58,337 bases of DNA from Podarcis erhardii (GCA_964252035.1 CAXUOO010000139.1); one strand, 5' to 3'. Positions 16,483 to 39,050 are shown, numbered from the stretch's first letter. Notes: generated by a model from the letters alone, not told the origin. Numbers and translations are program-made.

Positions 16483-19400
16483 ATGGCGGGCCTCAAATGC
16501 TCATTCCTGGAGGCTTTTTATACACACCAAACGCTGTTGTTGACTGGAGCAAGCGGCTTTGTAGGCAAAGTCTTGGTAGCACAGTTGCTCAAAAGCACCC
16601 GTGCAGCGAAAATATACGTATTGTTGCGAGCTCCAGCAGGGCGGTCAGCCCAAGAGCGTTTGATGAGCGATATATTTGCAAGCCCAGCATTCGATGAAAT
16701 TAAAAAAGGTTTTACAGAGAGAGACTGGCAAGACCAGCTAAGCACGCGAGTGGAAGCTATTCCAGGCGACTTACTGCTTCCGGATCTTGGGATTCAGCGT
16801 CATAACCTGCTTCGAAAACTTCAAAACGAAGTGACTGTCGTAATTCATCTAGCTGCATCCGTTCATTTCAACTCTCCATTGAAAGACAACTATAGAAGCA
16901 ATGTTGAAGGGACGATGCGTGTTCTTGACTTTGCGAGAAAGTGCCCTCATTTGCAAGTATTCGTTCATACATCCACATGTTACGTAAATTCGGATCGAGA
17001 TGGCCGCATAAAAGAGGCTATCACTCCTTTACCGTGGAAAGTTGAAGAGCTACTCACGGAAGTGCAGAAGACCATCGACTTTAGTGATCGACGTGGAAGA
17101 GTCAGTACAACACGCAGAGTGGAAAATAAACGCCATAATGGTAGACTCCTCAATATCAAATATTATATTCGAAGTAGAGCTCAAGAGATTTTTTGCAAAA
17201 CAGCTCCCTACATGCAATTAGCAGCGTCAGGCCTCGAACGAAGTAAAAATAAGTGTCTTTAGCTGCAACTCAGTGAGGGCCAACTAGCTTCAAGTTTGTT
17301 ATCAAAGCAGCTGCCCGTGCGGACGTTTGAGAGTCACACACTCTTCTTCGACAGTAAAAGGAGAGCTAACAGACGTGGCTTGAAGCTAGTCGATAGTAGT
17401 TCATTGTTGCAATTCTCTGTCGCCAGTCGCTAGTTCTATATTATGCGCGATCTATTTGCACGCTTATCCGCAGAATCCGACCGATTTTGTCATTCTTCGT
17501 TCCTTGCTCACCTGAAAATTTGAATGGTTGCTGTTTGTAGGATTCCCAGACGGATGTTGAAAAACTCGAAAAGCAGCTGCTCGGCAGCTTCCCAAATACA
17601 TATACCTTTACGAAGCGGCTTTCTGAATCCCTTCTATTACGGGAGTGGGAAAAAGCTTTCTTCTTCCCAGAAGACAAGCACAGTATAAAGTTTCCTCTTT
17701 GCATGCTTCGGCCTTCTATCGTGGGTGCTGCATATAGCCATCCTCGACGAGGATGGATTGACAGTGTCAACGCTACTGGGGGCATGCTTCTCCTTTGTGA
17801 GTTCCAGTCACACAAAAAGAATGCTGGACACGCGGCAACTTCCCGCTATATGCCGCTCGAGCTATCCTTCTTACAAAGTTTATACAAACGTTTCAAACTA
17901 GCTGAAACCGCAGTTCACCTCTACAAAGCAATTCTACTTCTTTAAGCACACATACTCATGCCTCCCTGCTAGTGCGAATGCTCTTTTGTAGAGAATAAAA
18001 ATCTTTATGTCTGTCAAAGTTGCTTTATAATGGAAACAGTTTGTCAAGCAGGTAGGAGCAACTTACCTTTCCCAATATCTCGTACAAGGATGTGAAATGT
18101 AGTATATTGAGGTTTCTGCTGAAGGACTTCTCGTAGACGGTGCACGATGGGTTTTAGATTGGTATACGAGGTTGCATGAAGCACTTCATACGAAATTTCT
18201 CTCGCGATAAACAGGAACAGCTTACGACCCTTTTCCTCGGTTTCATATTTTTTAGCTCCTTTAGAATAATTCTGAGAAAGTCAGAGCATCCTCCCGGTAT
18301 GTGGATTTGTCTAGTTGAATATTATCATTTGGTATATGCTAAACACGATATATACGAAGTCGAAACAAGGTAGCTGATAGTGAATCAGTAGCACCAACTT
18401 GTGTAGTTATCAACTAGATACATTCTTTCATGGAACGTTGTTTATGCCAGCCGTGAACTCAGCGTCTCTTAATCAAGCTAAACTGTGAGATGACTATATA
18501 CCAGGTTTATGATATGCACAGACACAGGCGCAATTCAACCAGACTAAAACAAATTGCTCGTCACAGAAAAAAAGTTATATGGATACACTACCCAAAGAAT
18601 TGTGCTGCACTCCCTGCTTCCTGATATCGGCAGGATGTTTTCGTTAGCCCTAACAATATACGTCAACACATATCATCAACGCTATTTTATGTGGGCGGCA
18701 TCTTTAGATCGCTGCCTCTTTTTTCATTATGGTTACTTTTAAAAAGTCAGTTTAACGAAAAAATACGAAAAAAGGGAAACGTTTGTATTACCTCGCGCGC
18801 GTTCAGCCGAAACATATTTCATTATATGTGTATACATGTACTCTGTCAGCAGAGACAGCGGACATTTTCACGAGGACAAAGTCTTAAACGGTTCTTATGC
18901 AAGTAGAACCAAATTGTGTACGCTAGTTTTTTTTCTCTGGCCTTGACATTCGTTGCAGTGCGTTGGGAGTTTTGAAGTGCCTTCCAGCTGACCCTGCTCT
19001 GATAGGAGATAATATTCCAGTGGACGCGGTCGCGGACGGTTTGATTGTGTCAGCTGCAGCCGTGGCAGCTGCCCACGCTCTTAAAAATTCAGTCACAATG
19101 GCAACAGCTGCGGCAGCACATCCTGCTGCAGCAGCTTCTGTCGCTGCTGCCGCTTGTGTGCTACCTGACAGTCTACCCGAACCTGTTAAAATAAAGAATT
19201 CAACGATGAGTGGTGCACAGGCATCTTCTGATGATGAGGCGCATACTGAGAAAGCAGTAAAAGGATCGCCTCCAGGCGTATACGTCTTTCACTGCTGCAC
19301 TAGTGATGTCAATCCAATCCGTTGGGGTGACATCCTAGATTATGGAAGAGAATATAATATGATGAACCCATATTTTCACCGAATCAGCAGAATGCTTCAG

Positions 19401-20969
19401 ACCCCCTATTTCGAAGGCGACTTCGACGAATTTCGACGGTAATTGCTGCAGAGATTATCTTTGACTAGAAGGCCTAGGGCGATTATCAGCACAAAATGTA
19501 TGTATGCGTCCATATATACATCTTTGGATTGCTTGCGAGCGTGCGAGAGTTCGATTTGCTGAAAAAGTGATGTACAGACTTTAACAGTTAACCTTGGTTC
19601 GATTTTCGTATTTAGTTGAAGGCAGCACATCAATTGGAATTAGCACTTTCATCGAAGCAAGTGGCAGTTACCGTATTCATGGAAGGCCCCAAACTTTTGA
19701 GGAGCTTGTCTTGCAGAACTATGCTAGATTTGAATAAGTGTTCATAGAAGTGATACAAATATTCAAGAAAAGCTAGAAACAGGCCTTTACAACGTTGTGC
19801 GAGAAGGGCAGTTTGTTTACTTGGCACATACATAAAGCGACATACTACATATAGTTGGTGGGGCCTGTGAATTGAAAAAGAAAGATTTTGGTAAATGGTT
19901 TGCTCGAAATGATTTGCACCGATTTGGCGCCTGTTTGCACAATGGTATATTTGATCGGTGAATTCGGTGATAGCTAAGAATGCAAAGCGAGAAAGATCGT
20001 TGGATACGGTTAGATTCAGCCGATTTTCATTTCGTATGTTATACTACAGGAAAAACTAGGCGAGGTAGAGTGCGCCAAAGTATGATAGACTCCAGGCATA
20101 CCACTCAATTAGGCCACACACAGCGGTGAAGAGGGCAGGTATCCTTGTAGATAAAGGCTGCTTCTAGCCACGTATCGAGCAGAGGTGAACTCTAGACTGT
20201 CAAAGCAAAAGTGATAAGCCTTATTTGACGTAATCAAGTATCTACATATGCTCCAAAATAGTGCAGTATTAATTTGTTTGATTAAGCAGGACCACTGCTA
20301 TACGTACGCTTTACGCTGTCGCCTCGGAGGGGCTAACGTACGGAAACACGCCTGATTAAATTGTACAGACACACGACTAAAATTGTAAACCTGAGGACTG
20401 TGCCACGTAGAGTATATAGTTTATTCCAGTACACATTGAATGCCTCCTTCATAACCAAGAAGAAGTTGTTTACTAAATTCTGAGCCGAGTTGTAAATACA
20501 ATAACTTGTGATGCTATAACGTTACTTCGACATGCCCGAATCACTTTTCCTACTAGAATGGAACATTGGCGATCTAAAATAGATTCCCTTGCAGACTCTG
20601 AAACCCCAAAGTCTAAGGTCTCCATTTTTGAACATATGTTTTTGCAGGCGCTTTTTCTACCTTCAGCGTCTACCTGCGGCAGTTGTGGCAACCGCAACTT
20701 CATACTTGCTTCCCTCCTCTTCTGTGCTCGCGCGCAAAGCGCACGTATATAACGCAGGCATCAAACGCGTGGAGAAAGCGGCAGATGCTTTTCGGCCATT
20801 TACCTATCATGAATGGATATTTGAACAACGCAACTCGCGAAAGCTTCAGTATCTTCTGACGCCTCAAGAGCGGGAGGTTTTTCTATTGGATCCGCAGAAG
20901 ATTGACTGGCGCACATGGACTCACTACTTCTTCTATGGTCTCGCACGCTGGTTTTGAAAGAACAATCAG
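16483..20969 (+). other. Fatty acyl-CoA reductase (NAD-binding + Sterile/male-sterility) domain of the fusion, exons 1-4
   Basis: GxxGxxG, YxxxK and C-terminal FAR motifs are visible in the translations. Confidence 0.95.
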
Positions 20970-23900
20970 GTCAGACGGAAACCCTTTGGGAACATTACCT
21001 TGCACCAGATCGCCGCCTGTGCAGCCTACAACTTATTTTTATTAGATATACAAAAATGTATTCCTATGCAAAAACACGCAGTTAGATTATTGTTTACACG
21101 TGTACTGTATATATGGGGAAGTGTGTAATCACTACCGTACATCTGTGAAAAATACATTGTTTACAACCTATGAATTAACTCACAAGTTGCCATCAGGTGA
21201 GAAACACATGCGTTTTGTTCATAGCAACTAAAGTGGGTGACTACACTGAAGTGCTAAAAGAACATCAATAGTTGTCGGGTTGAGCCGTGTATCTCTAAAT
21301 TCCAGATTGAAGCATAAAAAAAAAATTTAGATACGCCATTGTAGAAATGACTCTAGTGATTCTACGGTGGATCAGCTTTTAAACAATGCTGCGAAGGGTA
21401 TTAGACCGGTGAGATCGAAGCTCTTCTTTGTCAAAATGGAGGTTATTTGTAACTGGTGCTTTGCCCATTTACCCTCTCTTATACCATGGATGGAAGAAAG
21501 TACAGAACGCAACGTAAAACAGGTGCTCTCAGACAAGCGAAGTTAGCTCGATTACACTTTCGGATGTTGTTGTAGTCGCATTATCATGTTAATTTAAATC
21601 AAGGTGCAAAGCAAGCCTCCACCTCCTCTGCGTCAGCCTTTGCACATTACAGCATGAAATAAGGTTATTGCAAAACGTCTTCACATCAACTCATAACCCG
21701 TGCGACGAACTGCACTTCAAGCGGAGCTTATTTTACAGTAGCCGCATACGAGGATGGCTCCAACGTTGTGTCGTAATATAACCTATTCGTTCAGCCTGCG
21801 AGCCGCCCCCCCCTCCACACCTGTACGTAAATCTACTCTACAAGCACGTTCTCAGTGAGCCGCATAGTCCCCCTGCCTTTATCTCGAGACTTCTGCCCTA
21901 CCCTGCTGCGCTGGATTTTCTGAGGAATGCGGGCCCATTGCAGCACTGCCCCTCCCCTGCTTCCATCAAAAATGCAGTTTTGGACAGTAGAGATATCGCG
22001 GGAGTTGTGCAGGCGGAAGCACATCGCATTACAGCTTCGGGCGTCCGGCGAAGAGGAACAAAACGCAATACTAGACTAGGTGTGTCCTCGCCCGTGCTGT
22101 TGCTGAAGCCTCCTGCACCGTCACTGACACTGAGTGTGAGGAGTCGTCTCAACATGTCACTGTGTAGTAGCTTCAAGAACTTGGAAAAAAAAATGAAAAG
22201 AAAAATCCAATCATATCCAATAATAATTGCGACACCGCATCGTGCCGTGAGAATCTGACATATTTAATGGCTGAAGTAGCAATAATAATCACTGCCGCCA
22301 AAACCGCGATTTGCACAAAATCTCTACAGCATACCAGACGTATGTACGCGTATAGCATAAAAGCAGCGTCCCGTTTGAAGAAGTGCTTAGACACGCCTCG
22401 AAAGAAGCGTTGTGCTCTCCGTGGCTTTCAACTACTGATCTTCAAAGTTCTCGTACTGTGAGGGACAAAATTTCATGGGATGAGAGACTACGTGCGTTTG
22501 CAGCAGCTATTAAACATATAGGGTTTGAGCAGTTGTAAGGCTACCAGCACCAACGCTGGCGGTGATTGCCTCTCAATATGTGTCGCTTACCGGACTTGCA
22601 GAGAATATTTGTAGTTGCAAAAAACCAGCGGCATAATTGCAAATATTCAGCAGCCGTAGCGCATCCGCAGCTTTTTGTTTGGAAAAAAGTCAGACGGCAA
22701 GTAATTGGTAAAACGACGCTTGCGTTTTTCGTGTACATGCAAGGTATGCGCACCATCAGCAGGATCTTAGAAGGTGAAGCAAACATCCGTAGCTCTACAT
22801 TTCAAAAGATTACAACAGCACCATTAGTTGTCTTGGAGTTTGTTTGCTTTGCGGAGCTGCTGGTTTAAAATGGGAAGCTAAAGATTTTTCTGGGTCATCT
22901 CTTGCCACACAAACGAAAATTGAGTTTGCGCTGAGAATGAAGCAAGAATGACCCGGTACGGCCTGACTTCAGCAGGCGGTTGCACTGGATTCTCGCATTG
23001 TCGAGTCTGTTATACTGGTATTCTTCGATATTCACTCGTAGAATCATGTATAAATATGTGTATGTATGCATGCAAGTGTTTTTTAAAAATGATCAATGCC
23101 ATACATGTGTGGGCGCATTCTGCATGAATTTGAAGCAGGCTGCAAGACGAAAGCGGAGAGAATTGCAACGAATATTTTAGAGGTTGAGAGAACCAAAGTA
23201 CACTGTAGTGCTGAAATGAGTAGGCATGATCCAAAATCTTTTACGACGCTTACGTACTTTCTTACGTTGGGGTAATCGGTGACTACAGGCTCAAGGCTGC
23301 ACGAAGTCGAGGCTGAACTGCGCGCTGAAGCTGAAAAGTTATACAATCAAGTAGCTGGCACCATTAAGCCGGCAGCAGTGTATATGATTGGAGCGCTTCT
23401 ACATACTGTTTTTCTACGGCTCTTTGACCGCGTAGTGGCTGAAAAAGTTGAAATGGAGCGATTGAAAAAGGTTATATCTGAGGCGAAAGGCCCCGTTGTT
23501 CTTGTGCCAACACACTGTTCGCACCTGGTACGATACCTCTATCTGCACTGTATACAAAAGGAGTGGCGTCCATACTTATACTGGTCCATCAAACCGCGGT
23601 GCGCGAACAAAATTTGTGATAACATTTTCAAAAGCAGAGAATGCTGTTACTTGGAGTTATATGGACAGAATATAGAAGTGCACGCACACAAAAATAAGAT
23701 TTATTCACGTGAGTCTGAGCTCTAGAGGCGTCAACATTACAAATGTGTGCAATAGTCTAAATAAGATATACATATGTATGCATATATATATATATATATA
23801 TACATACAATTGTACATAAACATATCTATACTCATATGAAATATATATATATATATATATACATGTATATTTGTACATATAAGTACATTTATTACATGCT

Positions 23901-25590
23901 CGTTTCTCGCTAGCTGATTGCAGCTTCTACATATATGTGCTTTCATGTTCAGTTTTAAGGTGGAAGTAGATAATTGAGGTGGTTTTTTTAATTCCGCGTG
24001 TCAGCATATACTAGAAGTTGGCCCCTTTAGTGCTTTCGGGTTTGCGTCATACTTAAGTATTGTTCAACTAGCTGCGTTCTATGAAAAAAAGACGCAGTCT
24101 TATGCAAATGTTATGGTTAGAGACTGGCACACATTCTTGCTTGGCAGATCCGCACATTTTTCATCAAAATCATGTTTACAACGTCTGCGTTGACACAGCT
24201 TAGTAAAACTCTTCTACTTTTATCACATTAGCACTCTACCGTTATTTGCACTTTCTCCAGCTCTTCCTCTGCACTTCTCCGTCTCTCTATCCTCTTGCAA
24301 TTTCTATTTTTCACAAAAACGTGTTAGTTTTCATTCACCGAAACATATGGTTGTTAAGTCATCTGTCCCAGGCTTGTAAATGTAGGCCTTTTTTGAATGC
24401 TAGTCTTGCCGTGTGTAGTCAGACTTCCTCAAGTTCGTCCCGTCAATCTAACTTTTTCTTTTGGCTTACCAGGACAACTCGATCTACATTACGTCGTTAT
24501 TATCCGTAGAAAACATGTAGATACATATATGCCATGTAGAAAATCTTGTGAAAAAATGCAGTTTTACCAATCGAACCTTGAACCTCGTCCATGGCCGTCG
24601 AAGTGCCCAAATTGCTTCTTTTATGGTTTTGACTCTTGGTGTCTACTTTCTCATAGATCTGTGTATGCTGTAAAAATTTGGACTGCTTTTACATTTGTGC
24701 AGGACGCACTTATCCTTTTCTACACGTGCTTAGGAAACGGTATACCTCTACCGTTTCTTGCGGTTGACGAAGCGTTCGCCCACCTCTCATGCGTGAATTA
24801 TTTATTGAGGAATGCTGGCGCCTTTTTTGTCAAAAGGTTCTCTGTCTGCTGCTCATCTCCAGCAACTGCAGCACATTCTACCCTCTACTGTACTATTTTC
24901 AAGGAATATATACGCGCAATCGCGCACAATTACGGGGTCTTGGCCTTATTTCTTGAGGGTGGACGGAGTTATAGCGGTTAGTGTAGTGACTGGATTCGTT
25001 TGGAGACTATACTAAAATAAACACTCATAAGTCTTTCTTTCTGTCTCTCTTTTTATATATATGTCCAATCACATTGTCTGCTACCTCACACCTTTCCTCT
25101 ATAAATTCCGGTATTGCTTAGACTACAAACCATAATGTGCGTGTATTCACTTGTATGGCCGCCTAAGGCAACTGTCTACAAGTGTCATTGACCGCCGGGT
25201 ATCGAGGTGTACATACATTGAAGGGACGTACGGGGAAATCTCTGTGCAACTACCACAGTGAAGACGCCATTTGGTACTTGAACGCGCTGTTGACATTGAT
25301 TGCGCGATATTACACATGATCACAGTGAATACACACACAGTATATTTATAGATTTGTGAAATGTACTTGTGTATAAGTATATTATAAGTATATACATTCA
25401 TACATAGCTGCATGGTTTACGATGCATCCACTTCCGCTTGCATAGCTTTCTTGTAACCAGTGAAACAACCGCAAGAAGAAAAGCAAACTAAACATATTCA
25501 AACTGCTGCATTCTGAAAAGTTAGTGTTTACGTAGACGAAGAGGTGCAGAAAACATAGTTCTATCGACTTAGACGTCGGTAGGTGATACG

Positions 25591-25623
<33 letters not shown>

Positions 25624-27026
25624 GAGCATGTAAATGTACTTATCTTACAAAGCTGATTTCACCTGGTGTTCTCCTGAAGCATCAATACAACAAAATTCTA
25701 CAAGTCATTTTGATTGTATATGGTACATATTTATATTTCCACATATGTATGTACATTAAAATACGTACTTGCACATAATTTGAGATAGCAGTGGGTCACT
25801 TCATAGCTCACTGATTCACATTCAAAGTGCATAATATCTTTTCTCCTGATTGCAAGTAAAATAACTCCAAAAAACATCTTGAATTTTCGCGCCTGGCAGT
25901 CTTCGCTAACACATTTTATGCACAGATATGTCTATTCAGACATATATACACACAAGTAGATATGTGCATCTACGGATACATGTATACAGACGTGGCCTTT
26001 TCTTCTACTTTTATAGCAAAATGCAGACTGCAGCACTATGTTGCACAATTGTTGATGTACGCAGATCAAATCAGCCTTTGCACCGATGAATGATGTATAC
26101 ATGTGTAAAAATTAGATTCACTTCTAGAATTAGAACACATTCGCGTATTAGATATACACTTTCCATACAAGTATAGATCGCCTTTAGCGCGTTCTAGAAA
26201 AACTGTCGCATGCTCACGTTTTTTTTGGTAACCAATAATGTAGTGTACATATACGTGTTTGCATGGTATATATGTACGTCTTTCATGCTGCAAACAAGTA
26301 AGCACACGATAGATATCTGTTTTTGCTGGAACGTCGAACTTAATGGTTTCTAGGCCTGCTAAAACCGCCCAGCACTGGGCTTTTACGCTGTTTGACGGAA
26401 TTCGTATTCTCCGGCGAAGAAAGAGACTTGACGTTTGTGCCGGTTACCATTGCTTATGACAAAGTCTTTGAAGCAAACGACTTTCCGCAGAAGATGGCAG
26501 GCGGTGCTGAAAATTCTAAAGATATAAGGAGTTTGATGCGTGCGCTTTGGAGCGCTGCTCAAGACGGGCCAAATAATCGCATGCTTGACGCCGCGGAAGA
26601 AGCGCAAGGTTTTCAGCAGCGCTTTGGCTTAGGTCAAAAACCAATGGGCTCAACCTACATCCGATTTGCGGCCCCTATCAGCTTTCAGGTACGGTCAAAA
26701 TTGTAGAAGAAATCCATTCAATCTTATTTTGTCCTGAGGGATCGTGGTAGTGAGCTCCGTTGACGTAAAAAATCAACGATAGGTTTTGGTGGTCCGCTTA
26801 CGTGAAATAAAGCACTAAATTCGTCGATCTAGGAGCAGCTCCCAATGCTAGAAGAAGAACTCTATAGCAGCTACTGAGTTATTTGTCCAGGAGATAAATC
26901 AATTACAGCTTGATTAGAGTTCTTTATCGTTTATTTTCTAGGGTAATTCAGCTAAGTTTCCCCAGGGGGTTCTGATATCATAAACATTCTCAAAAGTTAG
27001 GCAACAAGCAAGCTACAGCTCAGCTG

Positions 27027-27057
<31 letters not shown>

Positions 27058-30000
27058 CGTATATAGATGTGGTGCAGACATTGTCACGGTAGTTGCAGTA
27101 TAGTCAATTACATCAGGAAAGTGGAAGTAATTCAAGAAGTCCAGTTCAGGTGCACTCATAGTCTCAAAATGATATGCTCAGTTTTGGTAACCCCACGTCA
27201 CCATAGCAGCTTTGCTGTACAAATATCAGAAATCTGAATGACCGTAATACTCTTCACTCTTTCACTCTCATTCAGACCAACAATGATGAGAGCGTCCATG
27301 TACGCTAATAGATTAATGCTCGAGCTTAGGTGACAGTGAATCTGAACACGTCAAACAATAGAACTGCTGCTGTGCTCACTCATTCCTAGCCTTCAACCTA
27401 GTGAAAGAACAAAATGGAGCACAGATTATGTCTCTGCCCTCTTTACGCACTCTTTATCGATTATTATACGGTATTCTCAGACCGTGTATAAATCAATTGA
27501 CACGTATTCAAAGCATATATAGAAGATAGAATGCGCTAGAGAGCGAAGGCTGTGCCCGTCCAGTCATGGCTCTACATTGCTTGCCTGGGGCGAGTTTGCT
27601 TACTGCAACTGTCAGTCGCAATAAGCAGTCGAAGACTTTTTCACCAAACTGCAGAGCCAGTTGCAATATCTTTCTCCTGAAAAGGGATATAGACATATGC
27701 CTATATATATATATATATTTATATCCATTAAATTTTCTCAGGCCACTAGCCAGATACAAGTGTTGCAGACGTCCGAGAATTTCAGCTATGGTTTCTCTGG
27801 AACTCTTGGCATGGGCATACAGATGAGCAGTGAAGAAGCTAGATACTATAACTTCTATTTTGCTGAGGACGTTTGCTAGTTTGATCTAAAAGTGACTAAA
27901 CTTTCAGAAGAGAAGGAAACTGCATTAAATAACGAGAGACAGCAATATTTAAGCTTCAAGGACAAAACAACGACGCGGTTTAGCAGTAAACTGACGTACG
28001 AGTAAAAGATGCGTACACTATCCCATGTATGATAAAAGAACCACGGAGACTCTTTTTAATGTTGCGTCACTCTTTCTCGGAACTGTTCAATGTGACTACG
28101 GACTAAACGCGTGTGTGGCTTCCTCACTTGCTACACGCCAGAATCTGCTTTTTCCGTCTTCGTAAGATGTACTTACACATTCCTGACATATAAATGTGTG
28201 ACAACGTGTGTCCCTCTTCATCAACCGGACGAAAAGCAGTAAATACCGTCTGTTTTCTCTCAGAATTTTCTGCAACAGCACCTTTTGAGCAATCCTACTC
28301 TTGAAATAAATCTTCCAGCCTTCAGCAATGACGCATCCTCAACGGTTGATTGGGAGCTTTGCTCGCAGAGAAAAGCGAGACAGCAGCAGCAACAACACAA
28401 GGCAAAAAAAGCTGCTACTACTGCTGCAGGCGACTTGCATCAGGATAGGAGTGAAAGAGGAACTGAGAAAAAGCACACGCAGTGTACGAATGAGAAGGCA
28501 CACGTCCACTCTCAACTCAAAAACCAGGCAAGCACACAGGCTCGTTGCTTATTGCTGAAGCGGCAAACTTCTGCGAAATTTTTTCCCGTATTTGATCTAA
28601 ACAAATCGCAGTGAGATAGCGCACACACAGTAAAGAAGTGTTACGGGCATGTGCATGCAAAGCAGTAGAACTGGTCACTCACCGGGAAGGTATTTGTTCT
28701 TACTACGAGGCCATACAACAAGAGGCTTACAATTGTATATATATTTTTTCATTTGTATATATAAGTACAAAGACACGGGGTATAACAGATACATATTGCC
28801 GGTAATAAATGTGCACGTATATATATATATATATCTACATATAAATACACCTGTATATTGATATGACCTAAAAGGACGGTATTATAAGTCGGGGTGAAGT
28901 ATTGTGTCTTTACGTAAGCGTGAGTAGAGCATGTTGATCTACGCGTAGCTCAAATGGTATAGTTTTTTTCCAGGAAAAGCTACGATTCTCGAATTTCATG
29001 CATAGCTGTGTCTACATAAATCGATCGTATTCATCGATGAAGACGGCTGAGCCATTTTCACATCAGTGCTGTGAGTACACTTTGCGAACGCTCGTATGTC
29101 GTGAATTCAGGGAATACATGGATGAGGAACATATAAGTGTATATATATAAATATATATAAATATATATATATATATATATGTATATGTACTGGTATAGAC
29201 AGAATACGAAGCTAAGCTCGAATCAAAAAATTTTGAAACATTCTAGCTATGTGTATATATATATATATATATATATGCACTTACAAAGCAAATTATAATA
29301 TTTATATTCTGTAAGAGATGCCTCTTTCGCATTTACAAGTCTATAAAATTAAATCCTTTGCATTGCTGCGTGGGCCTTAAATCGATTTTTCTCTGTCTTT
29401 GAATGTAACGGGTGTGCTGCAGCTTACAGAAGCTTTTGCAAATCATTTGATTGACGCTTTATCTGACAACTTGATAATTTCCCCTACTTCTCTGGTTTCT
29501 TCTGTTCTCTGTTTGCACCGCAAGGGTGTCAGAGAAGAAGATATGGTGAGATACTTTAGACAGAAGCTTCCCACCAACGACGAAAAAATAATCAAAGGGA
29601 AGTGATAGTCGTCTTTCAGTCTGCATGAACAAATGCAGATTATACAAATTAGTGAACGTAAACGCTTGTTTCCGTATGTTAACGTATACCATTGTATATA
29701 TATATATATATACACTGATGCGTACTTCTGTTGCAAACGGTGCGAGGACAAAGATGAATTCATTGAGGAATTCTATTACTTTATTTATCAAGCTTTACTA
29801 ACTGTATCGATGTGGGGGGGGGGGACTCTTGTTGCACGTACATTAGAAATTCTAATTGGTTTAGGGTGAATTCCTTTAATTCTTTACAAGTAGACTTTTG
29901 CTTAGAGATAGTACTTGTTTATGATACGCGTGCCGCCCAAATTAGTTACTTCAGTCGAGTTCTCTTACTATGTCAGCTTGGAATGGCCTGAGATTGTGTG

Positions 30001-30248
30001 AGCACGGGTCAGTAGTAACAGCTGAACAAATTTTATATTGTAGAGTTCAGACAAAGATTGCAGCCTACTCACATATGTATACGCTTGAAGAAGTTCCTCA
30101 TATATGTCGGCGTTGCAACAGTACCACATATCTACCCGTTTAAAGTGCAAAGAGCCATATATTTGATATCGCCTTGGGAGATTCGAGGTTTGACAATTGA
30201 CGCCGATGTAAATATACTTCTTTTTTTTCTATCATGAGCATATGTTTG

Positions 30249-30308
<60 letters not shown>

Positions 30309-33300
30309 GTATATGTATTATTTCAAAGGCGTTTTCAATATAAAATTTTGAATCATCGAATTGATTACCTGATTTCAAGTCGAAAGCTCCACAACAGCGA
30401 TCAGTGGTTACGCAGCAGCAGTGTCGAAAACGGAAAGGCACACTTAGTCGAAAGTGTAGAGTGTGATTGAAGTATCTTTATTATACGCACTTTCACTCTG
30501 GCGCAGCTGTTCTTATGTATAGAAGTAGTTTGTGTAATTATGTGCTGTATCATGGGAAAAGTGTGTTCAAACAAATAGATATATGTACACAATGTGTGAC
30601 TGTTTTCGTAATTTGGAGTCGTTCATTTGCCGGGTGTCTTTTAATGTACACTCTCTCTGTAACATTTTGCGTAGTCAAAGACAGTAAGCAGGCATTTGAA
30701 TCGTATATGTGTAGAAATATAGAAATTCGCCTCTGTCTCAATCACGGCAGATGTATTCTTTTGCCTCGATGGGTTCAAACCTTCGGTTTAACTTTTTGCC
30801 TTGTTGCTTCTACGAAGGGAGAGTGTGTGACCGTCGCGTGGGCACACGCTTTTTACATCAGTTTCTTATCAGATAACACAAAGTCCTGATGAGTTTGCGC
30901 TCGAAATAATGATAAATAAAGAATGATAAAAGCGTTGCTAATGTGCTTCAATTTATGCTTGTTACGAGCTATGATAGTCACGCCTGGTGCAGTTCTGTAC
31001 ATTACTTCGGATTCTTACTTCAAATATATATAGCTCTAACTTGGAACGATACAGAGAAAATTAGCATTTATCTTCGGCTTACAAGTCACAATCGTCGCTT
31101 TATACGGAATAACTAGACCAGCACAATATATCTAGTAGACACTTGTCTGGTGTGCACATGCAGCACAGGCAATCCTGGCCACTCAGATAATTTTTTCTTT
31201 TGTGCACTACCAGCGCTAAATAAGTCATACGAAAATGCCTCTCACAGCAGCTGAGCATATTGTGCTCGTGTCTGGTTCGGCCGTATAAGGCGACGTTTGT
31301 TACTGTCACGCAAAAGACAAACGTCATATGCCCAGCATAGAGCCTTGGAAGTTGACAGTAAACGTGTTTCCAGACAAACATCATATGCACCAGCATAGAG
31401 CCTTAGAATTTGACAGTAAACGTGTTTCCAGACAAACGTCATATGCACCAGCATAGAGCCTTACAATTTGACAGTAAACGTGTTTCCAGACAAACGTCAT
31501 ATGCCCAACATAGAGCCTTGGAAGTTGACAGTAAACGTGTTTCCAGACAAACGTCATATGCCCAGCATAGAGCCTTACAACTTGACAGTAAACGTGTTTC
31601 CAGACAAACATCATATGCCCCAGCATAGAGCCTTGCAATTTGACAGTAAACGTGTTTCCAGACAAACATCATATGCCCCAGCATAGAGCCTTGCAATTTG
31701 ACAGTAAACGTGTTTCCAGAGAAATGCCACATGCCCCAGCATAGAGCCTTGCAAGTTGACAGGAAAGGTGTTTCCAGACAAACTTCATATGCCCAGCATA
31801 GAGCCTTGCAAGTTGACAGGAAAGGTGTTTCACCTACTTTTTTGTGTTTGCTCAACAGGAAGAACAGGTGCTGTGGCTGCGAGAACAGGTGCTTGTGCGT
31901 GGCGGGCACCTAGCGCCTGGCGTCGGAGGCTTTTCCTTCGATGCTCGATTGATCATACAAGCGACAGTGCGGACGTATTTGAGAGGAATTGTTTCTAGTT
32001 GTGGAAGTGGCTGGGCCGCGATTGAGAATAGCTGCTTGAACACAAACAGTGAAGCGTCTGCGCTAGAAGCGCTATCAGCTCTTTCTCGCGTCACTGTGAA
32101 CGGCGAAACGAGTGTAAGTTCACTGGGCTTAGACGCTTCTCGACTGCTGCTTGCATTCTACCGCAATCAATGTGCACATCTCTTTCTGCCAGAAGCCATC
32201 GTCTGCGTTGCGCTGCTTTCTTTTGGAAAAGAAAAAGGCGTGGGAAGCGGGTGTGAGTCAACAAGCCCTTCACAAAAAGGCTCAATTTGCAGCGCACCTT
32301 GTTGGCGAGCAGTTCGTCGGCCGAGCCAAGACGAGCAGCCACGAAGTCGCGAATGTACGGTACAAATACCTCAGTTTGCAGATTTGATACATGTAATTTA
32401 TGCACACTACACGTATAGGTGTTTCTCTGTGGAGCTTCCGCCTGCGCGAGGAAAAAATACGTAAAACGAACAGATATTCATCAATATATATGTGAACTTA
32501 TGTGCACCCTATGCATATGTTAAAGTATAGATACATATATATGTACATATATCTATACTTTTACATGTCTTTACGTACGTGTAGATCGACGGTGACGGCG
32601 CTGAGATAGCTAAACAAGGCGCGGTTCGATCCCGTTTACAGAAGCGCATGCGTCTGCTGACAAGCAATTCGGCTTCTGCGGACCTTTTTCATATACATAT
32701 ATATATATATATATATACATGTTGCTTGCAAGACCGCAACTCTTCAAATCAGGGTTCTTTTCATGCAGAGAAAGAAAGCATTATGTGAAACACGTGCTTA
32801 CAACGTTTCTCGTTTTTCCGTTCGAACCGAATAAGTCATTTTGTGGATTTTTTTGGGGTGGATTTTCTATCAAGTAGTATTCATGTCTGCGCATCCATCT
32901 ACATGAAGGTACGCGTAAATTAGAGATTATGTATAATATATATATAAATATATATTGTATGCTAAATATGACCTCAAGGATAAATCTAACAGTAATAGAT
33001 GCTGCGTATGAGTGCTGGAAAAGGTTTTTATGACATGAATTGTAACAATACAATGTACGAATAATGTAGTACGTACCTACGATTAGTAAGTTTACAAATA
33101 ATGTACATATGCGTAGAAAACTTTACTATATATATATAATATATAGTTAGATTCATATGTGTATTCATCTTCATATACAAAATGTAAAGTATAGTAGGTG
33201 TGTATGTGTATTCATACGTATGCTAAGTTTAGACGCAGTGGTTATGCTTTTTCTTATTGTACCCGAGAAAGTTCCCAATTGCTGCTAAATAGTTTCTTTT

Positions 33301-35288
33301 TTTTTTGCGGGACAGACTCCGTTTTGTAGCTTACTAAATATCAGCACAACAAACTCGTATTCTGCCTTTTGTACAGTATATGAATATCTGTATGTAAATC
33401 TGTGTATCTATAGCTATATATATACACTTATAATATATGAAAATCAAGTACATCTGATTTCGATAACATTTTATAACCTGCTTCGATTAGTGAATTGAGG
33501 ATTTACGTGACTGTATAATTTGTTCTGAGTCATAAGCACACTTAGAGAGAGCTTTTCGATTGATACAACTGAAGAAGGCCCTTAGCTCACTATTACGTAT
33601 ACACGCGTATATAAATAAATGAATAAATATATATTTATGTCTTCGCTGGTAGAGAAAAAGTCCATGCAGTGCTTATACTCATATGCATTCACGTCTGTGC
33701 CCTACTACTGCTACCACTTTTTCAATTCCCAGTATGTCAGCTGGGCTTACAGAGGAGGAGATTACTTTCTCGATACTTTCACCGAGCAACCGTCAGTTAT
33801 TTCACATGGGATCTCAAATCCACATGTACTCATACATATCCACATACACATCTGAATTTTCCCACCTTGTCCTTTTCGACAGCACGCCCTCCTTCTGTGT
33901 CGTAATAATTTTCTGAAACGGAAAGTATACTACAGCTTACACCGACCGAACCTCAGTAGTGCTTGAGTAAGTGTAGGCAGCCTTCCATCAGTACCTTCCG
34001 CGTACTGGTATATCAAATTTCTCTTAAAAAAATCTGATCTATCTTTACACACTTGCCGCCGCCTCTGGGCCGCGAACCGCATTACTTGTCTGTGTGCATT
34101 TTCTTTGAGAAAAAAGGATACAAATGCAGCTGCCGTTTCCTGCCCTAATACTGCAACTTCCCCTCTTCTTGCACTTCTCTATAATAACCCAAGATTCGTG
34201 TGCTGCTGCCTCGTAACCAGCTTTACTGACCTTTTCTCTTCCTTATTTCCTCAAAACAGGTTATTCATGTGATGCTGTCTCGCCGTCTCCTTCGAGCGCT
34301 GCCGTCTCCGCCCTCTCCGCCAACTACCCCCGCTGCAGAAAAACCGGAACTTCATGTACCAGAAAATGCAGTGGAAACAGCTGAAGCAGTTGCAGGACGT
34401 AGTTACATTTTTCACCCAGCAGCAGAGTCGGACGTTGCGTTCCTGGCTTCGTACATTTGGCCTTTCATTGATAGCTTTTGGGCTTGCGGCATGAGCCTCT
34501 TCGCTCTGCAAGCGACAGAAAAGAACTGCCCTACCGGTGAAACAGGAAGGCTTTTTTTGACTTTCGTTTTCTAGACTGTTCGTGCATTTTCTATAGCAGA
34601 TATAATCAGGTATTCGCATTTGTGAAGATTCCTACTGCTCTATCTATCGAGCTCTATGTCTTACATTCAGGAGTGCATTGGCTGTTTCCTTTGAACGAAA
34701 CTCGTTTCTTCGAAGTCCATTGATGTTGGAACTGGCGTTGAACTCTAGTGGCAATGACTTCTACATTTGCGCAGAACTAGTTTTACATAATCAGCGGATA
34801 CATTTGCATACAAACAATCAGTGAAGATACTCAGAATTATGTCTTGACGCAACCCGCGTCTCACAAGCGTAAAATCACATCAGTTAGATTAGTACGCCAT
34901 AAAAAAAAGAAGACCCCCGCTAGGCCTTTCAGTCACGTTGCGATCTCCTTTGTATAAATAAATAAATAAATATATATATTTTTATATACTATTTTTTTAT
35001 ATATCAGATCGTTTACAATGGAGTATTACATGTATATACGCTTGTTTGTGTGATATATATATATATGTATGTATATATATATACACATATTTTTTTAGAT
35101 ACCGTACACACAGTCATATATGTGCTACACTGCAGCTCAGTCCCGCAGTTTTCATATACTACAGTAAGTAACTGAAAGAAGTTTCGCACTATATTACCTA
35201 TAATATAGCTGTTCATGCACACGCTACATTGTTCAAATATGTATGCGTGTATGTCTGTATATATGTATAAATATGTTTAAATAAATAA

Positions 35289-35324
<36 letters not shown>

Positions 35325-37168
35325 CCGTGTAGATATGCTTACGAATATATTCCTAGTCACACGTGTATATGATATGCATATGCCCTTTACCTGACATGAT
35401 AGACATACATATACGTGTATATATATATATATATATATAAATATATATATATACATATATATAGATCATGCCCTTATTTTTGTACAGTGCTGCAGCTAAA
35501 GAGGGTGTGTTTACATGTACCTTAAAAAAGTGCAGCCGACGGATAGTAGAATGGGAAATGCGGAAGAATGCTTTATTTCGTTGACATTACTTCCCGGATC
35601 TCGTGGGGAACTGGTGTGGAAAACGCGAGAGGTGTTTACACACAGAATACATCTTCCGTTCTCTTTTGCCTTTTGTTTTGTATTCTCTCTCTTCCTGCCC
35701 GTCTTTTTTTCTTTGTGTCCTTATTCACATCTCTCTGCGCATATATGTCAGTCTCCATCTCACTGTCGTCCACTCTCTCTTTCTCTCTCTCTCTATATAT
35801 ATATTTATATACATACGTAATATATGTATTGTATTATTTTTCCTTTACATGTTTAAAACGCTCTTTTCGATGCGTTTCCGACTCAGGTGTAGAATATCCT
35901 GAACATGCACCATACAGTAGGAAAAGTCGCGGTTGTATGACAAAACAGCAACTGGTTTCCCGTGCGCATTGGCTTGCCAATGCTCTTTTCAGAGAAGGCT
36001 TGATAGTGAGTGTAGAGAAGTTTGTATACGTGTATATGTAATATATATATATATATATATAAAGTATAGGTTTATCAGATTTTATCTACACGACAAAACA
36101 CTGCTCGCTTCTTCCACGGCGCTTATAAAATTATAGTTCCATGTGCGTCGATACACTGTCTTCAACACTGGGCGTTAAATTATGTTACCGTGTTGGTTCA
36201 AACGCGGGTGTTACCTGGCAGCACGTTGAAGCACCTCTGACTACGTCAATCACGCATGTCATACAGCTGTCTGTGCATGCGCAATTATCGTATTTGCAGA
36301 AGAGCTTTGTTCTAGTTGCAAGCAGCAGAAAATCAGCAGTGTGAATTCAGCATTCTTAACCAAGCTCAGCCACATGAGATGCATATGTGGTTGCTGAAAA
36401 GTACGATCATTGATATCGAGCTATATTTCTTGCAGAAGAGCAGAAAAAATCATTGTAAGTAGTGAAGAATCAATGGCATACGTCAGGATGTGAATACTCT
36501 GTAGTACAAATCTGCCACATGTACATGTGGTACGTCAGGGTGCACCAATATACTTGTCCTGAAGTCTATATTTAGGTATTGGTAAAGTATATATATATAA
36601 CTTAGAAACGTTACTCTACTACTCGTGTAGGCGGCATTCGATCATTCTAACAAGCAAATCGTTCTTATTAAAAATTTATTTGTATAGATAAATGTAAGTG
36701 AAACGGATTTCCATAGCCCTTCAAAGAAGAGCTTGTTGAATCCTGAGTGGCAAGGAGTTTGAAAATGGGAATCACGCACTTATACTACATTGTCTTACTT
36801 ATCAAAATCGAGCAAGGGTTCGCCATACACATGTACGTATGTAATATATATATATATATATATATATCTAAATTTATACCTATGTAGGCATATCAACAAC
36901 GCTTTTCGTCTGAATTCGCAGCTTTTTCCGGAGAGCTGCGTATTGCCAGCGGTGCGATGTGCAGTGGAAGCGTTTCGGCGCGTGCGATTACTGCGAGAGA
37001 GGAATGTAAACGAAAGCATCAACAGCAACAGCAGCAACAGCAGCGGCTCCAGAGAAGTAGGCGCACTCATTAGCCTGGATGACAGCGAAATCGACGATGA
37101 TATACTACTCGAGCTTGTACCACAATTTCAAGAGGAGACAGCCCTCCAAGTCAGTTCATTGAAGCAAT

Positions 37169-37221
<53 letters not shown>

Positions 37222-37673
37222 TGATCTGGTGGTTGTGCACATAAGATGAGAGAACGTATATGTACGTAGATTAAACATGAACAGGGGCCGCTCGGCTTTG
37301 CAAAACGACGTCAGGTGCTAAAACGTCAAGGGGTGCGTTACAGATCCACTATTTGTATATCTGCCGGAAGTCAACGTTGAGTATGTGAAGGCCTGCATTC
37401 ATGCAGCGGTAGAAGCTCTATTTCGCTTGACACATCTACGCGCTTATTGTAGCACAGCCCAAGCACTATATATATATATACTGTTTAAGTGCTTTCATTT
37501 GTGTGTATCAGGACTTCTTGGACACTCTGCATGAGATGAGGAAAGTAGCCATTTCAGGAAACGGAAACTCCAAGGGGTGGGTCAACACTCTATGGGACCA
37601 ACTAGTTCAAGCTTCTCATTCACTTCCTTTTCCGTTACATTTTCCTGTTGGTTTCGCTACTTGTGTTTTTTGA
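16483..37673 (+). CDS. FARAT: Bifunctional fatty acyl-CoA reductase / glycerolipid (DHAP/G3P-type) acyltransferase fusion; exons 16483-17061 (or 17100), 17541-17796, 18959-19438, 20648-20969, 21795-22079, 23289-23527, 24703-24976, 26354-26688, 28279-28450/28503, 29423/29430-29545, 31859-32354, 34260-34536, 35887-36005, 36922-37149, 37512-37673
   Basis: FAR half: Rossmann TGASGFVGK, IHLAASVHF, HTSTCYV, catalytic PNTYTFTK, RPSIVGA..PRRGWID, IPVD, and a Sterile-type C-terminus (FRPFTYHEWIF, IDW..YGL). Acyltransferase half: PTHCSHL|D (HxxxxD split by an intron), GAFFVKR, FLEGGRS, FVPVTIAYDKVFE, YIRFAAPIS, LIISPTSLV, WLREQVLVRGG, FYRNQCAHLF, IWPFIDSFW. Junctions are GT-AG and phase-consistent except for three single-base breaks (near 17796, 20951, 32232). 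The exon 1, exon 9/10 and last-exon boundaries are uncertain. Confidence 0.88.
21795..37673 (+). other. PlsB/GPAT/DHAPAT-type acyltransferase domain and C-terminal helical region of the fusion, exons 5-15
   Basis: Acyltransferase blocks I-IV: HCSHLD, GAFFVKR, FLEGGRS, PVTIAYD. Confidence 0.9.
31316..31832. repeat. Tandem minisatellite, 9 units of 57-58 bp (last 56 bp), in FARAT intron 10
   Basis: Unit gacaaacgtcatatgcccagcatagagccttggaagttgacagtaaacgtgtttcca. Units start at 31316, 31373, 31431, 31489, 31546, 31603, 31661, 31719 and 31777. No spacers. Confidence 0.97.
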
Positions 37674-39050
37674 TGATTCTCCCTTTTACAAATAACCAGT
37701 CCACTCTCAATTCTGTGCTGCCTTCTTCACCCTCTTTGTCAAAATGTGTCCATCATCTTTATCTTTTCAACCTGGATTTTTTTCTAAAAAAAATGTTGTG
37801 AATGCCGGATCGTTCCTCTTGCTTACAGTTTTGTCCTAAAGCAATCATAACAGCTGTAGTCTATTCACCACGTTTTTCTTCTCTTTTCTTCGTCTCGCTT
37901 TCTTCTCCATCTCGTCTCTCTCCTGCTTCCGCTCTTCGTTCCTAGTGTGACTCAGTCTCTCATCGACCTTCTAGTCAAGTGATTCATTATGCATCTTCCT
38001 TCTTCTCTTGCTTTGTCGCAAAGCAAATCGACTTTTTTTCCTGAGTGTGTTTGATGGGCTGAACACCTTATCTGTTCAATGTGCTGTCTATTGTTGATTT
38101 CCAGTCATTCTCTCTGAGAGCCGCAACTACTTTTGTCCTCCTTCTTGGTCTCCATTCTGTTTGTCCCGAGTTATTTGCAGTTTTTTTTTCTTGCTTTCCC
38201 TATTCTCTATGGTGAAACACAGCCGCATATCACAAGCCTTCGGTATAGAGAGAAGCCGAATTTCGTGGTACAAGTGTAGAGCGTAGATAATATACGGATT
38301 GGTGTATTTTTTTTGAAGAATAGTATCAAGGGGGGGGGGCCACGTAGCATTTTTGAACGTATAACTTAGAATAAAAAGGTAAGTGACTTATTTTTCTGAG
38401 TTTAATAATATTGAGAAGTCGCTGCAAGCAAACAGAATGGGGGTGGATCTTATGGTCCACCTTACGGGAGGGTGAGCATACCAGTCAGTATGCTGTAAAA
38501 TGTCTACAGGTGTTGTTGCAACCTCGTAAATTACGACAAGTCTAAATCTCAGTAAAAGTCTATTCGATTATCTCAAGTACACTGTTAAATTATATAATCT
38601 AATATTAATCCAATCGAGAGGTAATTTCGACTATATATTTCCGCAGCCAGCAGTGCGCCGCGATATACATACGCATGCAATTCACAGAGTGCTGAGAATC
38701 TGCAGAAATGAGTGTACGAAATGAATACGTAAATGGAAGGAAGCATCATCAGCGCCTGCTTCATTCAGAAGTTGCTTGCTTTTGGTTCTGAAAGGAAGCT
38801 CAGCTACAAGAAGACTACAACGTCCGCTTTTTAGTTACAATATACGCTCGTTGCTGAATGTTTTCTTCGCTCGGGAGCATTGAGGAAATAAAGCAACGAA
38901 TAAAGTTTTGTGTGTGCCGCATGACTGCTACAGGCCACTAACGCGCCAGCAAATAATTCTATCTTTGCCAGTCCTTGCTCGACTATGAGTGCGCTTGAAT
39001 TCCGTCTTTCTGCATACTTGGCGATGGGAGGCAGATGAAGCAGTGAATGC

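Follow-up and report, generated by a model that had tools for sequence, protein, structure and literature searches.

A coccidian FAR-acyltransferase fusion gene of the FARAT type in DNA assembled together with a wall lizard

Gene structure and domain content

The window analyzed here, a stretch of 58,337 nucleotides from the Podarcis erhardii assembly, is coccidian parasite DNA assembled together with that of the wall lizard, and it carries one long spliced FAR-acyltransferase gene. Homolog-guided splicing places this gene on the + strand at 16483-38988, in 16 exons that encode a product of about 1,480 residues. The spliced model is colinear from end to end with the 1526-aa Cystoisospora protein (51% identity, residues 7-1479), and the GT/GC..AG dinucleotides are intact in 15 of 15 introns. 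The gene order g2-FARAT-RRM gene is common to the window and T. gondii.

The N-terminal half has the features of a fatty acyl-CoA reductase (NAD_binding_4 plus Sterile), with the GxxGxxG and YxxxK motifs intact. Exon 1 (16483-17100) contains the start codon and encodes the FAR Rossmann fold (Pfam NAD_binding_4, 4.4e-45), whose GxxGxxG motif reads TGASGFVGK; it is 67-69% identical to Toxoplasma/Neospora and ends at the donor aga|GTCAGT. The active-site YTFTK (YxxxK) lies in exon 2 (17541-17800; NAD_binding_4, 3.5e-9), whose 3' end is uncertain by 4 nt. Both motifs align with those of the Tetrahymena enzyme TtFARAT and of amoebozoan FARATs. Exon 3 (18959-19438), which matches Cystoisospora residues 287-453 in tblastn, completes the Rossmann fold and, after a low-complexity insert rich in Ala, opens the C-terminal FAR domain, and exon 4 (20648-20969) encodes the Sterile domain (Pfam, 1e-15) and a linker up to the conserved fusion donor, cag|GTCAGA at 20970, a position shared with four other coccidia.

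The C-terminal half corresponds to a predicted acyltransferase of the GNPAT/DHAPAT type, with blocks I-IV and a GPAT_C domain. It begins in exon 5 (21795-22079) with a conserved N-terminal part (ACEPPPPP...; 54-58% identity in tblastn), followed by exon 6 (23289-23527), which ends inside block I (THCSHL|D, HxxxxD), exon 7 (24703-24976) with block II (GAFFVKR) and block III (FLEGGRS), and exon 8 (26354-26688) with block IV (VPVTIAYD). Exon 9 (28264-28527) is a poorly conserved insert that ends in a GC donor, cag|GCAAGC, equivalent in position and phase to a GT donor in T. gondii and Neospora. The GPAT_C region starts in exon 10 (29423-29545; weak GPAT_C match, 53-55% identity in tblastn) and has its core in exon 11 (31859-32354; GPAT_C, 2.2e-8). 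Exon 12 (34260-34536) was placed by tblastn, and exons 13 (35887-36005) and 14 (36922-37149) by tblastn to Cystoisospora and by their junctions. Exon 15 (37512-37576) ends at the donor ggg|GTGGGT at 37577; the original prediction had run through this donor into the intron and closed the gene at 37673, whereas the true last exon is exon 16 (38934-38988), which encodes the last 17 residues, ...LPVLARL, and then TGA. The domain content that had been predicted was thus recovered by Pfam for NAD_binding_4, Sterile and GPAT_C, but Acyltransferase stayed below threshold: the search was run on single exon ORFs, and because the domain is divided among three exons, exon 7 alone scores only 19.5 bits against a cut-off of 23 bits.

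All catalytic H/D/G/R/E/S positions are kept in the alignment, including the catalytic H and D of block I. Block I also carries two changes, R>C and Y>H (HRSYxD to HCSHLD), that are unique to the window among 12 FARATs, and they belong to a total of seven unique changes at columns invariant in the 11 other FARATs, compared with one to five in the others. The terminus -ARL is a PTS1-like signal, from which import into peroxisomes is predicted. Five other coccidia also conserve a terminal exon with ARL/ARM and a stop, which was located in T. gondii, Besnoitia and Neospora (..FPFFARL) and in E. stiedai (..FPIFARM). TtFARAT and the FARATs of Acanthamoeba and other amoebozoans end in the same ...P-x-x-A-R-L motif.

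The fusion junction

The two halves meet at intron 4 (20970-21794; 825 nt, GT..AG, phase 1), exactly as originally called. The junction phase and the acceptor, ..GCAG|CC TGY GAR CC, are identical in T. gondii, Besnoitia, Neospora and E. stiedai, and single blastp HSPs of the spliced model pass through the fusion point in Paramecium (9-891, 2e-85) and in an oomycete FARAT. The earlier claims of a FARAT architecture and of a second half without an evident start of its own are both supported: orthologs are fused in six coccidian genera with conserved junction phase, junction-spanning HSPs and a common C-terminal end, and exon 5 contains no Met. As for the single phase-linked exon chain that had been described, the FAR and acyltransferase exons are indeed colinear and form one chain, but the reading frame is broken in the assembled sequence. 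On sequence grounds, the FAR-acyltransferase architecture is real, but it is not new.

The locus could also be read as two adjacent genes, a stand-alone FAR of ~490 residues ending after the Sterile domain and a separate downstream DHAPAT-like gene. Such a reading could draw on the in-frame stop just past the Sterile domain in the window, on the separate GenBank models of 487 aa and 793 aa in T. gondii, and on a 2011 survey that calls the fusion absent from Toxoplasma (PMC3143110). It is nevertheless highly improbable, as the T. gondii FAR model owes its end solely to a missed GC donor (CAATCAG|GCAAGT), beyond which it continues into the intron, and the T. gondii acyltransferase model begins inside the conserved exon 5, the first 152 nt of which (of 285) lie upstream of its start, with an invented N-terminus and without the ARL exon. 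Exon 5 lacks Met in every species examined, in five genera its acceptor and the donor of exon 4 agree in being phase 1, five other coccidia have fused models, and homology to ciliate FARATs is unbroken through the junction. A stand-alone, FAR1-like enzyme was also considered for the first half and rejected: the stop at 20955-57 follows directly on the Sterile domain without a hydrophobic tail or C-terminal membrane anchor, and all relatives continue to the conserved donor. A search of sequencing runs for RNA containing the locus found none. The evidence at the junction is consistent with one fused gene.

Frame breaks in the assembled sequence

The frame of exon 4 runs into a TGA at 20955-57, 13 nt 5' of the conserved donor. 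This stop (break 1, 20952-20957) directly follows a T4 run and arises from a loss of frame at that run, where the window has 1 nt fewer than its relatives; in the DNA comparison, T. gondii, Neospora, Besnoitia and E. stiedai read W-L-L-K/Q-E-Q/P-S with one base more, and relative to all four the missing base falls in the first Leu codon after Trp. Break 2 is a +1 shift in exon 11, where an A5 run (32232-36) has one base too many and homology changes frame at ...SFGKE/AWEAG. In addition, the register at the exon 2/3 junction differs by 1 nt from that of the four relatives, whose exon 2 donor is T|GTRAGT in phase 1, and the window stays in frame only through a weak donor at 17801, at the cost of one additional residue. 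Two alternative donors that would rescue break 1 (GT at 20938 and GC at 20947, both phase 1 and in frame) were rejected, as they remove 8-11 conserved residues and are unused by the relatives.

Taken together, the gene is probably an intact coccidian FARAT ortholog in the organism itself, a single 16-exon gene with a predicted bifunctional and peroxisomal product, and each of the two frame breaks most likely reflects either an error in the consensus or a minority variant, at a short homopolymer in a co-assembly of low coverage. Splice dinucleotides are kept throughout, the roughly 1,480 codons contain no other stop, homopolymers are the site of both internal breaks, and a set of DNA contigs (X1, depth 2-3), whose coverage reaches the region of break 1 and not break 2, has a hole there: one contig ends exactly at 20951, at the T4 run, and the next begins at 20982. 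Another X1 contig break, at 21317/21325, is likewise at a homopolymer.

The opposing reading is that of a true FARAT ortholog that is really broken in this lineage, a young pseudogene or decaying gene with its frameshifts in the DNA. In that case, the FAR half would stop at 20955-57, and any read-through product would be without the PTS1 and the final third of the acyltransferase half. Two frame breaks plus one junction dependent on a weak donor, all within 4.4 kb of coding sequence, count toward decay, as do the seven unique changes, two of them in catalytic block I, and a terminal branch of 0.71, compared with 0.23 for Cystoisospora, both of which would fit relaxed constraint. Moreover, X1 contigs match the assembly letter for letter elsewhere, with zero differences over about 4.3 kb, and so the assembly is not error-ridden in general. 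Weighing against decay, besides the lack of other nonsense codons and the intact introns, are the retained PTS1 exon and catalytic positions and the position of the X1 hole, the sole one in exons 4-5, whose start exactly at T4 would be unexpected had T4 been the only true sequence there, at flank depth. Decay thus seems unlikely, albeit a real contender. Because the contigs break exactly at the T4 run, X1 does not separate assembly error from real decay; assembly error is favored. A word search with exon 4 alone for fragments in closer relatives or other samples returned nothing, and too little of the neighboring RRM gene aligns with T. gondii for it to serve as a gauge of the assembly indel rate.

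Coccidian orthologs and phylogeny

Judged by its protein sequence, the window gene is an ortholog of FARAT-type genes in Cystoisospora, Besnoitia, Eimeria, Neospora and Toxoplasma. Its closest proteins among 1.84 billion are all coccidian (Neospora, 1111 aa, 67% identity; T. gondii, 66%; E. stiedai, 54%), and the fused domain set was found in Neospora and E. stiedai and, by precomputed domains, in a third-party T. gondii model, Besnoitia, Cystoisospora and E. flavescens. Annotated, fused models accordingly exist for Cystoisospora suis (1526 aa, P0158), Besnoitia besnoiti (BESB_065680, P0157), two Eimeria species (E. flavescens, P0159; E. stiedai, P0004), Neospora (NCLIV_021430, P0001/P0151) and the third-party T. 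gondii annotation (A0A0F7UUD5, P0155), while the standard T. gondii annotation divides the gene in two. The division of the T. gondii models goes back to the GC donor of the junction intron, and these models also miss the last exon. Most coccidian models are faulty: those of Neospora and the third-party T. gondii annotation skip the Sterile exons, the last exon is missing from the Besnoitia, Neospora and T. gondii models, and the E. stiedai model is divided after block IV.

A maximum-likelihood tree of the acyltransferase half (44 rows, 607 columns), built without eukaryotic mitochondrial GPAT1/2, bears on whether this half groups with ordinary glycerol-phosphate acyltransferases. Within that sampling it groups with FARAT/GNPAT, apart from PlsB-like enzymes (100/99). 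The window falls inside a coccidian clade (100/100), where its terminal branch exceeds those of all other Sarcocystidae-like rows, and the coccidian, ciliate and environmental FARATs are held together (99/98). A bacterial origin of the environmental FARATs nearest to the ciliates was rejected, as their neighbors are eukaryotic genes. FAR-acyltransferase proteins with the same Pfam set are also present in an oomycete, a labyrinthulid and a rhizarian in the protein collection.

Possible role and significance

By analogy with the Tetrahymena and Dictyostelium enzymes, the FARAT protein would be imported into the parasite peroxisome, its FAR half would convert acyl-CoA to fatty alcohol with NADPH, and its acyltransferase half would convert DHAP to 1-acyl-DHAP. 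The original prediction saw in this a one-gene entry into ether-lipid synthesis, a reading that is weak because two surveys list FAR and DHAPAT as present and AGPS as absent in T. gondii (PMC5755239, table 2; PMC6320678). The usual pathway context of FARAT would then be missing, which also counts against the main reading of the gene. The canonical alkyl-DHAP route, which would require that AGPS has been overlooked, is doubtful. Because Toxoplasma-group coccidia are reported to be without AGPS, the two products may instead go separate ways, the fatty alcohol into wax-type or free-alcohol lipids of the oocyst/sporocyst and the acyl-DHAP, once reduced to lysophosphatidate, into glycerolipids, a scheme that we put forward tentatively, at somewhat less than even chances. 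The oocyst-lipid role of FARAT, which the original prediction had offered as an alternative, is one that we infer. Fatty alcohols have reportedly been found in Eimeria oocyst walls, in an older account. A literature search returned nothing usable on Toxoplasma ether-lipid lipidomics or on fatty alcohols in Eimeria oocyst walls.

The window gene itself is an ordinary ortholog, and its worth lies in the comparison that it prompted. The 2011 paper states that the FAR-DHAPAT fusion is absent from Toxoplasma, and a 2026 paper that ciliates are the only Diaphoretickes with FARAT; contrary to both statements, the fusion is conserved from Eimeria to Toxoplasma. As by-products, the comparison reveals an overlooked GC donor and an overlooked PTS1 exon in published gene models of the Toxoplasma group, and FARAT becomes a new candidate, with a conserved PTS1, for the short list of predicted coccidian peroxisomal proteins, which are reported to be mainly oocyst-stage. 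This raises the question of what FARAT does without AGPS. That the coccidia as a whole retain a peroxisome-targeted FARAT despite AGPS loss is rather unlikely on present evidence; if true, the fusion would act outside ether-lipid synthesis, as a lumenal source of fatty alcohols (for wax-type or free-alcohol lipids in the wall of the oocyst or sporocyst) and of acyl-DHAP (for glycerolipids), and FARAT would be vertical in alveolates, as opposed to transferred into ciliates alone.

Comparison with known FARAT and GNPAT systems

The annotated coccidian homologs, none of which has been studied, share exon junctions, the terminal ARL exon and, in T. gondii, the neighboring genes with the window, to which the Sarcocystidae homologs are 51-63% identical; the frame breaks are confined to the window copy. 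TtFARAT of Tetrahymena thermophila (P0274, 1140 aa), a characterized bifunctional FAR/DHAPAT (PMC13012113), has the same domain order (NAD_binding_4, Sterile, Acyltransferase, GPAT_C), the same catalytic motifs and a C-terminal ...P-I/V-L-A-R-L, and its acyltransferase half lies in the sister clade of the coccidian one, although identity to the window is only about 25-34%. Ala-rich and charged inserts add about 340 residues to the coccidian protein, and its gene, unlike that of TtFARAT, is interrupted by 15 introns. AGPS is present in Tetrahymena, which produces plasmanyl lipids, but is reported absent in T. gondii. The FARATs of Dictyostelium (PMC7375469), Balamuthia (P0014) and Acanthamoeba (P0215) likewise combine the fusion with a PTS1-type end (..FPVVARL) and align with the window over the whole span between the FAR start and the final residue, but they form a different clade, and the organisms that carry them have the full pathway, including AGPS and PEDS1. 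Animal GNPAT (Myotis, P0315; Anolis, P0327) resembles the window in blocks I-IV, GPAT_C, a C-terminal A-K/R-L and membership of the FARAT/GNPAT clade. In animals, however, GNPAT and FAR1 are separate genes without fusion, and FAR1, rather than being a lumenal domain, is anchored in the membrane by its tail and acts at the cytosolic face of the peroxisome.

Gene model and genomic context

The window contains no N runs and has a G+C content of about 40%. When exon 1 is compared with 1.84 billion proteins, its best matches come from Neospora (67% identity), Toxoplasma (66%) and Eimeria stiedai (54%), confirming, at the level of protein similarity, that it is coccidian by affinity. Pfam searches of single exon ORFs recovered the predicted FAR domain (NAD_binding_4, 4.4e-45 and 3.5e-9; Sterile, 1e-15) and acyltransferase half (GPAT_C, 2.2e-8), the Acyltransferase match being sub-threshold because this domain is spread over three exons. 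Splicing was guided by the Cystoisospora (1526 aa), Besnoitia and Toxoplasma proteins, and each junction was solved by frame, GT/GC..AG and template fit. The resulting model has 16 exons (16483-38988) and 15 introns of 362-2313 nt, and encodes a product of 1,479 residues that is 51% identical to the Cystoisospora protein from residue 7 through the last residue. The start codon and the junction intron (20970-21794) of the original prediction are borne out by this homolog-guided splicing. Its phase-linked exon chain, however, is interrupted by a TGA at 20955-57 in the exon 4 frame, 13 nt ahead of the donor, and its gene end at 37673 results from reading exon 15 on into the following intron; the last exon lies at 38934-38988 (+ strand) and encodes ...LPVLARL, followed by TGA.

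The exon 9 donor, cag/GCAAGC (28528; slash, splice site), defines a GC-AG intron, and T. gondii and Neospora have GT at the same position. Considering this site and the alternative in-frame GC donor at 20947, the window gene has at least one GC-AG intron. At a fixed intron position, a GC donor seems to be gained or lost from one coccidian lineage to another.

The order of genes is common to the window and T. gondii: a hypothetical-protein gene (- strand), the FAR/acyltransferase locus, and an RRM-protein gene (- strand). The first is an intact, single exon ORF of 442 codons (9328-10653), without a Pfam domain on record, and is 31% identical (2e-33) to a 429-aa hypothetical T. gondii protein encoded upstream of the T. 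gondii FAR gene. The multi-exon RRM-protein gene (45565-47460, with more exons up to about 54000) encodes a CELF/Bruno-like RRM and is syntenic with the T. gondii 1066-aa RRM gene downstream of the locus, with one exon being 77% identical to this neighbour. It also contains long low-complexity stretches rich in Gln/Ala. (TA)n/(TATA)n microsatellites, translated as YIYIYI, are very common in the parasite introns and intergenic DNA (intronic examples: 30256-30318, 37173-37219, 23761-23910). A minisatellite (31315-31831; 58-nt unit, 9 copies, 92% matches, alternatively scored as a 230-nt period) occupies the end of intron 10, ending 27 nt short of the exon 11 acceptor, and creates spurious long ORFs in all three frames.

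A probable single fused gene in coccidia

The FARAT architecture is not new, and public databases already contain fused coccidian models, annotated in Besnoitia, Cystoisospora, Eimeria flavescens, E. stiedai, Neospora, and a third-party T. gondii annotation. Single alignments with a Paramecium FARAT (residues 9-891) and an oomycete FARAT cross the fusion point. As predicted, a separate start for the acyltransferase half is not evident, because exon 5 lacks a Met. The standard T. gondii models nevertheless divide the locus into proteins of 487 and 793 aa, consistent with FAR and acyltransferase being separate genes. This is highly improbable, since the FAR model reads through the GC donor of the junction intron (CAATCAG/GCAAGT) to a stop, and the 793-aa model begins within the conserved Met-less exon 5, omits its first 152 nt, replaces the frame with an invented N-terminus, and ends ahead of the last exon. 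Based on these faults, the two-gene reading looks like an annotation artefact. The GC donor of the junction intron is common to T. gondii, Neospora and Besnoitia, and its presence at the fusion junction in the Toxoplasma group seems to be absent from the literature. The published models of all three species mis-handle FARAT: the intron donor is GC (G/GCAAGT), read through by the T. gondii FAR model, and the last exon lies beyond the annotated ends. In the T. gondii locus (L001) the sites are L001:13849-13860 and L001:22082-22138, and the loci of the other two species (L003, L004) are alike.

Frame breaks in the window gene

At the end of exon 4, T. gondii, Neospora, Besnoitia and E. stiedai (4/4) encode Trp-Leu-Leu-Lys/Gln-Glu-Gln/Pro-Ser, followed by a phase-1 splice into ..GCAG/CC TGY GAR CC. 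The window sequence is the same but for one base missing from the first Leu codon, where it has a T4 run (20952-55). A second break is found within exon 11, where the homology changes frame at an A5 run (32232-36) that is one base longer than in the four relatives. The exon 2/3 junction, T/GTRAGT ... AG/GC in phase 1 in all relatives, has a perfect donor in the window (GTGAGT, 17797-17802), but the acceptor side (18955-18962) is one base short compared to the four relatives. The frame is preserved only with a weak donor 4 nt downstream of GTGAGT, adding one residue (Asp), indicating either a compensated shift to this donor or a third 1-nt loss in the assembly.

No RNA sequencing runs containing the window stretch were found. 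A single sample supplied contigs from two DNA runs (depth 2-3), which flank the first break without reaching the second and show zero differences from the window in about 4.3 kb. One contig stops precisely at 20951, immediately before the T4 run, and the following one starts at 20982; another contig break (21317/21325) is likewise at a homopolymer. The gap at the T4 run fits reads disagreeing at the run, but proves nothing. On balance, the gene is probably intact and the breaks are errors or minority variants, as its approximately 1,480 codons include no nonsense codon, all 15 introns are intact, and the catalytic residues and terminal signal are all retained. These same properties argue against real decay of a truly broken gene, which is rather unlikely even though, at columns that do not vary among 11 other FARATs, the window has seven changes of its own (others have 1-5), two of them in block I (HRSYxD to HCSHLD), and sits on a long terminal branch of the tree.

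Family placement

The acyltransferase half was placed in a maximum-likelihood tree of 44 rows and 607 columns that leaves out eukaryotic GPAT1/2. The window protein groups there with FARAT/GNPAT, separate from PlsB-like acyltransferases (100/99). It falls within coccidia (100/100). The sister group of coccidia and one environmental protein consists of FARATs from ciliates and from other environmental sequences (99/98); the genes around the environmental relatives are eukaryotic. Judging by these sequences, the fusion appears to be conserved across coccidia, which seems to be absent from the literature, goes against PMC3143110, and contradicts the claim that in Diaphoretickes FARAT occurs only in ciliates (PMC13012113). 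The full FAR-acyltransferase Pfam set is also found in proteins of an oomycete, a labyrinthulid and a rhizarian (Thraustotheca, Hondaea and Spongospora; proteins P0255, P0301 and P0287), which are 1151-1222 aa long and end in -AKL or -ARI. Diaphoretickes FARAT therefore extends beyond ciliates, against that 2026 paper.

The terminal exon and possible functions

The last exon ends in ..LPFFARL in T. gondii, Neospora and Besnoitia and in ..FPIFARM in E. stiedai, each followed by a stop. A conserved, putative PTS1 exon appears to end all these coccidian genes; it is missed by most models and seems to be absent from the literature. The gene's absence from the predicted T. gondii PTS1 proteome is probably due to this omission.

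Its PTS1 would direct the protein into the peroxisome, where it would convert acyl-CoA to fatty alcohol and DHAP to 1-acyl-DHAP. Oocyst walls have an acid-fast, triglyceride-rich lipid layer, and most of the peroxisomal proteins predicted in T. gondii are oocyst/sporozoite proteins, making an oocyst-stage role plausible but unproven. Fatty alcohols have reportedly been found in Eimeria walls. Use of both products in ether-lipid synthesis is doubtful, because two surveys that record FAR and DHAPAT in T. gondii give AGPS, the next enzyme, as absent (PMC5755239, PMC6320678). Separate fates for the two products are a better, if still tentative, possibility: the fatty alcohol would enter wax-type or free-alcohol lipids, and acyl-DHAP would pass via lysophosphatidate into neutral lipids. 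The mechanism is modelled on the characterized Tetrahymena and Dictyostelium enzymes (PMC13012113, PMC7375469). The C-terminus of TtFARAT, the Tetrahymena enzyme (..YPILARL), matches the coccidian last exon, as do those of the Acanthamoeba and Physarum FARATs.
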